From Cyanophora paradoxa CCMP329 (Eukaryota > Plantae > Glaucophyta): a stretch of 64,000 nt of DNA. The stretch spans positions 1-64,000 of the forward strand of contig QPMI01000251.1 of NCBI GenBank assembly GCA_004431415.1. The letters are read 5' to 3'. This document shows, piece by piece, positions 28,241 to 64,000 of the stretch. Position 1 is the first letter of the stretch. Each line of letters opens with the position of its first letter. Below the pieces are notes generated by a model, which did no database searches, had not been told where the DNA came from, and saw only the letters and a list, made by a program, of their open reading frames with translations. The translations under genes and the position numbers were made by a program.

Positions 28241-29690
28241 ATGGACCAGGCGGTTGGAGCTGCCGCCAAAGTGTGCGTCCGAGCGCGATCCGATCGCGAC
28301 TAGTACTCTTGCGATCGTGCGAGCGCGAGCGGCTGCTGCGGAGCGCTGACGCGAGCCCGCGCAGGGGTAAGTTCCTGCTGGACTTGCGGACGGCGGACCA
28401 GCAGGTGGCGAAGAAGGCCGCGGCGCTCGGCGAGCGCGTCGCCTGCCTCGTGGAAACCTCCCAGGGTGCGGCCCGCCCGCTCGCCGGCGCCTCCGTCCCC
28501 TCCCTTAAGCTTCCTACCCCGCCGAATCCTCCTCCTAGCCTGCTCCCGTCCGCCCGTCCTGCCACTCGCTGGGGTTTCGCCTCTTCAGCTTCCCACGCTG
28601 CCGCGCCGACAGTGCCACGGGCCTTGCGCTCTCACGTCGCTCCCTTCCGCCCAGCGCCCTTCCTCCTGCTCCTCATCTTTCCTTCCCCGCCTTTTCTGGC
28701 CCGTAACCTGTCGAGCTTCCCCTGTTCCTTCTTTCCTCAGACCCTTCGTCTCGTCTCATCCCCCTCGACCTCTTTCCCCTTCCTGCCGCCCTCGCCCCTC
28801 TTGTCCCGTCATCTCGCGCCATCTGCCGCCTTCGGGGCCTCCTTTCACGCCACCCCGCTCGCCGGGTCGCCCTAACGCCCTAACTCCGGCCCCCCGGCCT
28901 CACCTCCACCCCCCTGGCCCTCCTCCCGCCGTCCCGTTTCGCCGCGCCGGCGCACTCCATCCACGCCCCCCCCCCCCCCCCCCTTCCCCGGATCCCCTCC
29001 TCCCTCCCCTTTCCCTTCCCTTCCCCGTCTCCTACGGCATCCCTGGCCTTCTCCCTCCGCCCCGGCCGTCCTCGAGTACCCCGCCCCTCAACCCTCCCCG
29101 CTTGCCCCGTCCCGTCTCCGTCTCCTCCTCCGGCCTCTACATCCCCCCCCCCCCCCCCCCCCCCGCCCCTCCCTCCCCCTTCCCTCCCTCCTCCCTTCCC
29201 CTTCCTTCCCCCCGATCCTTAATCTCCATGCAATCGCGAGCGACCCCCCCCCCCCCACCCCACCCCCACCCCACCCCGCCACTCCCGCCCCCCCCCCCCC
29301 CCCCCCCCCCCCCCCCGCCCGGCAGGCATGGCGGGGTCGGCCTGGAAGGACAAGGCGGTGGGCGAACAGCTGGACGCCCTCAGGAAGAGCCTCGACGAGG
29401 CGGGCCTCTTCTACGCCGCCTACACCCGCGACCGCAAGGCGCCCCTCGTTGCTCCAACGCCCCTGTCTTCGGTTCGAGCTCCGCGCAGGGGCCCGGGCTG
29501 CTGCTGCGGGCGGCGCGCTTCTTCGCGTCGAAGAGCGACCTCAAGAGGGCCGAGGACCTCGAGACCAAGATCGCCAAAGTCATCCAGGACCTGGTGCGCT
29601 CTGCCGTTCCTTCGCGCCCAAATGAACGGGCGGCCTGACTTGAGCCGCGGCATCGCAGACCCTCGCCCTCTCCGCCGCGTGTGCCACGTG
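28241..29690 (+). other. MLKL N-terminal-like four-helix bundle (4HB / HeLo-like / MCAfunc-type) coding exons
   Basis: MDQAVGAAAKVGKFLLDLRTADQQVAKKAAALGERVACLVETSQGMAGSAWKDKAVGEQLDALRKSLDEAGLFYAAYTRDRKGPGLLLRAARFFASKSDLKRAEDLETKIAKVIQDLTLALS aligns by eye with MLKL (LGHRVLGL / FKAALEEA / RFLTASQD / KLSDVWKELSLLL). Confidence 0.65.
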
Positions 29691-62600: not shown

Positions 62601-64000
62601 GATCTCGTTGCGCAGGCGACGTGGAGCCGGCGGACGAGGCGATCCTCGCGAAGCCGGCGACGGCGTTCTTCGTGGCGCACGGGACGACGACGATGAAGTG
62701 GATCCAGCTCGCCAGCGGCGCCTCGACTCTCGGTCTCAAACAGGCGGTCGAGCGGGCGATGGGCCTCTCCGCGAACCGCAGGCGGCTGCGCATCGCGATG
62801 CCGGATGGCGAAGTTGTGCAGGCGTGCACCAGCTGCTCGCCGCCGTGCTTGGCGTTCAGTCACTCACGCCGTCCGCGCGCAGCCGTACACGAAGGACGCG
62901 ACGGAGATCCCGCTCGCCAAGACGCCCGCAAAGTCGGGCAGCATTCTCGTCGCGCGGGACCTCGGCGAGTACTACCTCAGCGTCGGGACCAGCTACGAGG
63001 GCCCCGTGTATGTCTATTGGTCGCTCAACGGGCAGCCGTCCGACGCGAAGGCGAAGCCGAAGCTCGCGCACGTGATGGTCGAGCTGTGGACGCAGGGCGC
63101 AGAGAGCAAGCGTGTGGGCTGTGGAAGGTGCCCGCGTCCGAGGGAAGCGTCGTGTTCAACCAGGTCGTGCTGCACTGGGGCACGATGAAGCTTCTACGCA
63201 GTGCGCGCGGCAGTGCTGCGCGCTCGCGATTTCCATGCTGCATCTTCACCAGGGGATGCCTGATCACTCTACGTGCCCGCGCAGGTACGGCGTGCGGGTG
63301 TGGACGATTCCGGAGCTGGAGGGCGAAACAGTGCCGCTGGTGTCGGACATCGTGGGCAAGAAGACGCGCGCCCTAAACTCGGGTGAGTGCCGTGCAGCGG
63401 GCTATAGAAGCGCGTGCTCCATTCGTGAACTGCACGGTTCTCACGATGCGCTCTCGCCTCGCTCGTCCCCGCAGGAGAGACGCCCGCGCTTTTCAACTCG
63501 CAGCCCAACCTGCACCTCTTCTACCGGCGGACGGGTGACAGCTCGCCGGTGACGCTGCAGCTGGCCGAGATGGCAGAGGGCGCGACGGGTGTCGACCTCA
63601 CTACCATGATCAAGCGCGTCTCCGTGTACTCGGTTCCAGAGGCTGCAAAGCAGCAGCTGTCTCTCGCAAGCGGCGACGCGATCAAGGTTCGTCGTATTCT
63701 ACTCTCGATGCCGGATCGCCGATCGGTTTACTCGACGTGCAGATGTACGCGGCGGACGGCACGCCTGTGCAGCTCACGGCGTCGGGTGTCACTCGGGTGT
63801 GGTAGTGGCCATCGGCGGGAGTTTCTACATGAGCGCGTCAGCCGGTTTCAGCTCGCGAAGCAAAGCGGTGGAGGGGCGAGACGTGACGGTCTCATGGGCC
63901 CTCTTGGGGGAGGCGAAAGGATCAGGGCCGCCCGTCTTCCACGAGATGTACGTGGAGCTGTGGGAGGAGAAGACACCGGAGACGCGAGCCGAGTGGACGC
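28241..64000 (+). CDS. Giant multi-exon protein, 3'-truncated by the window: MLKL-like 4HB / beta-helix / helical insert / beta-helix / acidic coil / filamin-like Ig / Ala-rich linker / (FN3-like-Ubl)n array
   Basis: ATG at 28241. Exons 28241-28272, 28365-28465, 29326-29438 and 29489 onward join in frame via GT-AG and GC-AG introns. The junctions checked from the filamin exon (ending ~35613) through the linker (36138-37577) into the repeat array are also in frame, and no stop remains between modules after splicing. Not every junction in 29.7-35.2 kb was verified. Confidence 0.65.
28466..29325 (+). other. 860-bp C/pyrimidine-rich intron (intron 2 of the giant gene)
   Basis: GTGCGG donor at 28466 and GCAG acceptor ending 29325 keep the frame (Q-G-M). 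It contains multiple poly-C runs. Confidence 0.7.
29957..34110 (+). other. Right-handed parallel beta-helix (PbH1) region, split by an alpha-helical insert at about 31570-33040
   Basis: The pectin-lyase-like cap reads VNTAGDLRALL...CLEAGNYEL....LRVRRPLSIEG. Repeats include LRVDSGCLFLDSCDI, AFVRQCQVIGQSRGGIDV, LVVDNLVSNNG, INRNIIRENRSNGIY, FRENRIQANAKSGVGV and IAACTIFDNKG. Confidence 0.7.
35243..35613 (+). other. Filamin/ABP280-type Ig-like domain exon
   Basis: SELRLGVLLRDADG...IGPIRVHIRLGERPLLGSPITI matches the filamin repeat pattern (V.L.D..G ... G...V.V.+G..+.GSP). Confidence 0.55.
36209..37068 (+). repeat. Coding tandem repeat, ~3.2 x 267 bp (89 aa; Ala/Ser/Gly-rich)
   Basis: AASAARDGDASGPAAAVPTDASAPTPAAASGSGSAAGEAARN... 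recurs at about 36209, 36476, 36743 and 37010 within the open frame 36177-37727. Confidence 0.9.
37373..64000 (+). repeat. Tandem array of 16 or more intron-containing coding modules (type A ~1733 bp, type B ~1675 bp), each ~415 aa FN3-like/Ubl/FN3-like/Ubl
   Basis: Module starts: A' 37373, A 38989, A 40722, A 42455, A 44187, B 45918, A 47590, B 49323, A 50998, B 52726, A 54397, B 56129, A 57804, B 59536, B 61211, B 62883. Each module has six introns at equivalent positions. Confidence 0.95.

Follow-up and report, generated by a model that had tools for sequence, protein, structure and literature searches.

Known four-helix bundle (4HB) domains act from the extreme N-terminus of the proteins that carry them, often in all-in-one fusions (PMC12881547; 10.1101/2022.03.16.484565), and permeabilise membranes (PMC12881547; PMC10951266); MLKL and the HeLo-like domains have a short helix between helices 3 and 4 (10.1101/2022.03.16.484565). 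Here we describe a giant gene from the glaucophyte Cyanophora paradoxa CCMP329 whose product would combine a candidate domain of this kind with a very long array of alternating FN3 and ubiquitin-like (Ubl) domains. It is located in a stretch of 64,000 nucleotides (contig QPMI01000251.1, positions 1 to 64,000), referred to below as the window. As in MLKL (MLKL_NTD, CDD cd21037), the HeLo, HeLo-like and RPW8-CC executioner types and the plant MLKLs Pm13 and R3AK, a predicted helical stretch of about 120 residues occupies the extreme N-terminus and is followed by a brace-like helix, with a helix spacing and a residue pattern that appear similar. Unlike in the MLKL, HeLo and NLR types, what follows is a putative beta-helix in two segments, then an Ig-like stretch and FN3-Ubl repeats that extend over thousands of residues, and neither a kinase or pseudokinase, nor a NACHT or NB-ARC domain, nor an amyloid motif was seen. 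The preliminary description, made from the letters of the DNA, did not recognise this architecture from characterised proteins, and a literature search, which reached little of the subscription literature, likewise brought up neither a study of Cyanophora proteins resembling MLKL nor one of arrays in which FN3 and ubiquitin-like domains alternate. The architecture is real and apparently undescribed, assembled from known folds and with a head that is unconfirmed.

Gene model, transcription and repeat array

From an ATG at 28241 on the plus strand, the gene can be followed through 131 exons encoding about 8,545 amino acids (aa), and it is still open at position 64000. Its exons were placed by hand from three-frame translations and then checked for frame by script. 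The front part of this model has 38 exons (2,118 aa) without stops from the ATG to 37576, and the array contributes 93. Among the 37 introns of the front part, 35 measure 49-71 nt, one 92 nt and one 860 nt; GT donors are present in 34 of them and GC donors in three. A CAG stands one base before the start ATG (28236-28240), and an upstream exon, either untranslated or coding, is possible.

Transcription was assessed over 32660-38640 of the window with RNA contigs that come from one study and represent three runs on two samples. Between 33425 and 38573, 14 introns of the final model are spliced out in these contigs but retained in a DNA run, and they lie to either side of the linker that joins head and array. 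Confirmed in this way are six introns within 33425-34177, the introns 34894-34964, 35034-35095, 35183-35242 and 35615-35672, and, in the array, the joints at 37576, 37754, 38129 and 38514. A provisional single intron of 202 nt (34894-35095) was rejected because RNA reveals an extra exon inside it (34965-35033), so that two introns take its place. RNA pieces also lie on the linker itself (35672-35827 and most of 36281-37362); its joints 35851/35914 and 36066/36138 are not among the RNA joints listed. Exon 36138-37576 (1,439 nt) has its first in-frame ATG only at 37560, and the array consequently needs a start further upstream. The depth of the RNA contigs on unique exons is 2-7, which is low and a poor measure, and that of the A-type array units is about 6-10 times higher; this excess, a weak measure as well, is the expectation for repeats on one transcript. 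We consider it very likely that one gene runs from the beta-helix into the array. The stop-free model and the spliced contigs support the single expressed gene that had been proposed. Its dimensions match those given earlier, namely about 8,000 aa with at least 16 modules of some 415 aa and no end within the window.

The array consists of 16 units (Table 1), the first of which begins at its FN3 domain and the last of which is cut by the window end. Nine units belong to type A (415 aa) and seven to type B (417 aa); along the gene they follow each other as AAAAABABABABABBB. While the module size given in the preliminary description stands, its description has to be corrected in that each module is an internal duplicate, FN3a-Ubl1-FN3b-Ubl2. 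Alignment of the two FN3+Ubl halves scored 188 and 145, where shuffled sequences reached at most 54 and 61, which indicates that the unit is the product of an older internal duplication. Protein identity between types A and B is 68%. A 206-bp exon is nearly the same in both (0-2 mismatches in 15/15 exon copies), and the 61-bp GC-donor intron behind it is identical in the A/B pair compared, whereas identity is 66-78% in the other exons and 46-64% in the other introns. All switches between A and B are located in this shared block of about 270 bp, and the shuffling of modules is best read as unequal crossing-over at this site. The ratio of nonsynonymous to synonymous substitution rates (dN/dS) is about 0.5 for A against B, and about 0.4 when a unit found in the Logan collection (see below) is compared with these two types; by this comparison, the repeats are under purifying selection. 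A non-coding satellite was rejected in view of the spliced RNA and the dN/dS below 1.

As written, the array is not open, with 22 bases missing over 13 array exons. In every array exon compared, the missing bases are single deletions in runs of G or C; an extra G at 38237 and 38298 is present in both RNA and DNA contigs, and one at 38583 in a DNA contig. The deletions look like PacBio errors, the contigs being collapsed over units and the evidence therefore strong but not unit-specific. The assembly is based on PacBio reads, and its annotation was made with BRAKER1/Augustus (PMC6704402). No annotated protein that combines head and array was among those retrieved, so that the public gene set probably contains the gene in pieces or not at all. 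Short-read DNA depth corresponds to about 5-6.5 A units, versus nine in the window; a GC-rich 267-bp repeat is likewise under-covered in the same run, and depth thus undercounts. The array is real, but the precise number of its units is uncertain.

When a profile built on four homologous array exons was searched against 1.84 billion representative proteins, only two true relatives emerged: P0001 (3,359 aa), which is the EukProt C. paradoxa model tig00001057_g6695.t1, and a Logan fragment. This model is the best protein match and, along with the introns of 49-71 nt and the high GC content, agrees with C. paradoxa as the source. The alternating FN3/Ubl repeat seems to be undescribed, since among these proteins it was found solely in the C. 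paradoxa model and in a single Logan cluster. A homologue search with an array open reading frame, a metagenome scan and an Rfam search gave no match. P0001 is not encoded in the window, since its identity reaches at most about 86%; it starts in the middle of a unit, and contains about eight units of further, more diverged types. Three of its tracts, of 55, 28 and 17 aa, occur without any difference in type B. By these similarities it would be either the distal part of the window gene or a closely recombining paralogue. Its C-terminus is abrupt and lies inside a Ubl, at a copy (87.5% match) of exon 23572-23679, which is situated 4.5 kb upstream of the ATG at 28241. Three units of P0001 carry charged insertions of about 100 aa inside Ubl2 (~1180-1280, 1700-1800 and 2215-2315). 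The Logan contig (L001:1-1817; SRR31724264) contains a further unit type that keeps the six intron positions and shares 52-80% aa identity per exon with A or B. Its first 30 bases equal its last 30, i.e., a 1,787-bp unit closed on itself, as expected for a collapsed tandem array. Two further candidates, a generic FN3/LRR/cadherin protein (P0003) and a mollusc lectin (P0004), had matched through short repeats and were rejected as kin.

The fold of the repeat was modelled with AlphaFold on a 204-aa half-unit (P0001:243-446), with the window exons as alignment. The mean predicted local distance difference test (pLDDT) value of this model is 70, with the FN3 part mostly at 70-87 and the Ubl part at 39-77; a single-sequence prediction was discarded (pLDDT 39.5). 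Residues 95-204 align to FN3 chains with Z values up to 10.2 (root-mean-square deviation 2.4 Å, 86/89 residues), nearly all of the top 50 fold matches are FN3 domains, and Pfam fn3 is matched by the most diverged repeat (expectation value, E, 0.001). The seven-stranded FN3 fold, already named in the preliminary description, is well supported by this model. For the second domain, one Ubl2 matches Pfam Ubiquitin_2 with E 0.012 (profile positions 7-82 of 86), with 52 bits when summed over the repeats, which are not independent. The Dsk2 UBL was the sole PDB match (E 1.1) and was gone with a Ubl-only profile, and no Ubl was among the listed fold-search matches, which the FN3 part dominated. We regard a beta-grasp fold of this domain as likely; the matches, together with a model of low confidence there, lend weak support to the ubiquitin-like identity that had been claimed.

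In the model, an unbroken strand leads from the end of the Ubl into the start of the FN3 (residues 87-102). This points to a rod without linkers and speaks against processing of the ubiquitin type. Gly-Gly is limited to Ubl1 of types B and C, where it stands straight after the last strand and lacks an extended tail; conjugation or release by a deubiquitinase therefore looks unlikely. With polyubiquitin, ISG15 and tandem ubiquitin-like proteins the array would share the presence of many beta-grasp-like domains per chain, but here these alternate with FN3 domains and have no extended Gly-Gly tail. Giant FN3 arrays of the titin/twitchin type have in common with it a long chain of FN3 domains of the intracellular type, the duplication of exon blocks and super-repeats; the Cyanophora protein differs from them in that every second domain of its array appears ubiquitin-like rather than Ig or FN3, in its helical head, and in that neither a signal peptide nor a membrane helix was seen.

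The N-terminal part of the protein

Residues 1-125 read as five helical segments. When amphipathic moments were compared with those of shuffled sequences, helices 24-43 (p 0.02) and 98-122 (p 0.016) stood out, and 54-78 and 86-96 were marginal. In helix spacing and in several residue patterns the domain looks similar to human MLKL, inclusive of a short helix between the third and the fourth; this likeness serves as a lead and not as a test. Atlas feature searches peaked at 0.79 and gave no lead. Kinship of the head with MLKL/HeLo, and with it the status of a candidate 4HB, appears probable to us, and the predicted helix of exon 6 may represent a brace-like element.

The beta-helix named in the preliminary description is suggested by motif counts, and it has to be divided into two segments separated by a predicted helical insert of about 350 aa. 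In the first segment, the G-hydrophobic-x-hydrophobic motif was observed 4 times versus 1.7 expected (p 0.08). The second, clearer segment has four matches to a PbH1-type coil motif (N-x-I-x-x-N...G-h-x-h) against 0.03 expected, the motif having been written after inspection; the last three matches are spaced by 23-25 aa. Searched one by one, the beta-helix-like exons had no match in Pfam or NCBIfam. A 176-aa exon of the helical insert gave just sub-threshold matches to models of the helical proteins PspM/Rv2743c. The charged linker beyond the second segment contains a Glu run (34647-34687), and the likeness to filamin of the beta-rich stretch behind it was judged by eye, with no Pfam Filamin match for its 123-aa exon or the adjoining small exons. 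The Ala/Ser/Gly-rich linker in front of the array holds the 267-bp (89-aa) tandem repeat mentioned above, in 3.2 copies (36208-37069).

Table 1. Parts of the giant gene and of its repeat array, in window coordinates
Position	Strand	Feature	Basis
28241-28272, 28365-28465, 29326-29438, 29489-29593, 29659-29687 (exons 1-5)	+	~125-aa helical N-terminal domain (head)	stop-free frame
28466-29325	+	intron of 860 nt, C-rich, inside head	
29439-29488	+	GC-AG intron inside head	
29740-29899 (exon 6)	+	Gly-rich loop and predicted helix, where the MLKL brace would sit	frame
29957-31511 (exons 7-15)	+	first beta-helix-like segment, aa ~181-550	frame
31567-32927 (exons 16-22)	+	predicted helical insert (~350 aa) between beta-helix-like segments, aa ~552-890	frame
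32982-34110 (exons 23-31)	+	second, clearer right-handed beta-helix segment (putative), aa ~890-1113	motif, RNA
34177-35614 (exons 32-35)	+	charged/acidic linker, then beta-rich filamin-Ig-like stretch	RNA
35673-37372	+	~510-aa Ala/Ser/Gly-rich low-complexity linker	composition
37373-64000	+	repeat array; 16 six-exon units, each 1.67-1.73 kb long; open at window end	self-BLAST, exon maps
43920-44186	+	one copy of the ~270-bp shared block (206-bp exon and 61-bp GC-donor intron)	

Proposed function and alternative explanations

In agreement with the preliminary description, no kinase or NTPase family was detected in the exons scanned against Pfam and NCBIfam or in P0001. The same holds for NACHT and NB-ARC domains, and beta-helix-like exons, not a kinase or pseudokinase, come after the brace-like helix. 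MLKL proper and the NLRs are defined by a kinase or NTPase behind the head, and the protein, which has neither in that place, belongs to neither class. Inspection by eye showed no signal peptide, and no membrane helix was found, the best 19-residue hydropathy being 1.28 in the window model and 1.56 in P0001. A surface stalk was rejected for these reasons, and the giant protein is probably cytosolic.

With a probability of about 0.4, the best explanation in our view is a cytosolic all-in-one sensor-executioner, with 8,545 aa as its minimum length and possibly over 11,000 aa, which would function in cell death or immunity. An MLKL/HeLo-type 4HB with its brace would occupy the N-terminus; behind it would come the beta-helix in its two segments, an Ig-like domain and then, attached through a long flexible tether, a rod made of about 31 FN3-Ubl pairs. 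The beta-helix and its helical insert would hold the bundle shut, while the rod might provide a multivalent bait or docking surface that is renewed through unequal crossing-over. Binding, clustering or cleavage would then release the bundle, and its oligomerisation would make the membrane leaky, with ion flux or cell death as a result. A more specific proposal, namely a kinase- and NTPase-free single-chain death or channel device in which an MLKL-type pore head is tether-gated by a rod of 40-50 FN3-Ubl pairs, their unit order being reshuffled at the shared exon, is doubtful at present; a rod of this size would extend roughly 0.2-0.3 micrometres. Glaucophytes are one of the three oldest branches of the plant lineage. 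Should the head be of the MLKL type, a necroptosis-type effector would exist in a glaucophyte, and its control module would differ from the known switches of the kinase, NLR and amyloid kinds; with its 125 aa, the head is small and easy to test.

Several observations weigh against a sensor-executioner. None of the known switches (kinase, NTPase, amyloid motif) was seen, and the repeats are homogenised to near identity under purifying rather than diversifying selection, which fits a structural rod equally well. The amphipathic moment of helix 1 (residues 3-20) does not rise above shuffles. Taken singly, the head exons are of 33-37 aa, give little power, and had no match in Pfam, the PDB (sequence search with three head exons), the Atlas or a homologue search (exon 4). 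The RNA comparison began at 32660, so that the 5' 4.4 kb (28241-32660), inclusive of the 860-nt head intron, lie outside it. With the window gene open at 64000 and P0001 ending at an exon-copy junction, a distal enzyme or anchor is possible. Furthermore, 4HB domains are not always killers; those of MCA serve as stretch-activated Ca2+ channels (PMC8049495), and the bundle of wheat Pm13 apparently senses rather than kills (10.64898/2026.08.07.743466).

The homogenised repeats and their purifying selection, along with the lack of direct support for MLKL kinship in the exon-wise searches, would suit a structural or scaffolding filament, for instance a cortical, flagellar-root or alveolar one, with the N-terminal helices as an ordinary bundle or lipid-binding foot devoid of pore activity. 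We consider such a filament unlikely, since the residue pattern and helix spacing appear close to those of MLKL and the low transcript depth is atypical of an abundant filament, depth being a poor measure. Quite unlikely, in our estimate, is a non-lethal bundle that serves as an MCA-type ion channel or membrane anchor, to which linker and FN3-Ubl rod would pass mechanical or osmotic force. Titin-like FN3 arrays are mechanical elements, and the continuous strand from Ubl to FN3 in our model suggests a stiff rod. MCA proteins yield stretch-activated cation currents (PMC8049495), and MCAfunc is among the annotations for plant 4HB domains (10.64898/2026.08.07.743466). A 4HB-type N-terminal membrane domain would possibly be common to both, but MCA has about 420 aa and a PLAC8 domain, whereas the window protein is 20 times longer and has no PLAC8 match. 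The bundle itself is unconfirmed, and no second anchor for the tether was found. To our knowledge, there is no precedent for the gating of a 4HB domain by a tether.

A further alternative is that the locus holds two or more genes, one with head and beta-helix and another with the array, or a decaying array whose copy number is inflated by assembly; we judge this improbable. No single RNA contig spans 32660-38640, none covers 36060-36259 and there are other holes as well at depths of 2-7; the reading frame of the linker includes an ATG at 35908, and the public gene set yielded no joint protein. The unspliced upstream frame, however, is open to about 36124 and would overlap any gene that starts at 35908. 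The deletions in the array exons and the short-read depth could speak for decay or inflation, but the former are located in homopolymers of a PacBio-based assembly and are restored in the contigs where tested, and the latter undercounts, the GC-rich 267-bp repeat being under-covered too. The same six-intron unit was moreover found in an outside sample, in a contig closed on itself.

Other features of the window

Upstream of the giant gene, positions 20300-23730 of the plus strand hold a very GC-rich intron-containing gene that resembles Sec3/exocyst component 1 by eye, with no exon-wise match in Pfam or the PDB; its last exon is the one (23572-23679) that matches the C-terminal end of P0001. 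A block with a GC content of 0.85-0.88 is duplicated at about 95% identity (1534-4647 and 11666-14810), with a partial third copy at 6652-8089. It contains long open reading frames without a Pfam match and has the look of a minus-strand gene with introns. Two related open reading frames on the minus strand (5164-5988 and 17325-18107), about 12.1 kb apart, match a Mug135-like C-terminal domain with E 1e-8 and 7e-4, respectively. AT-richer tandem repeats are found at 9018-9664 (158 bp, four copies) and 11016-11376 (189 bp, two copies).

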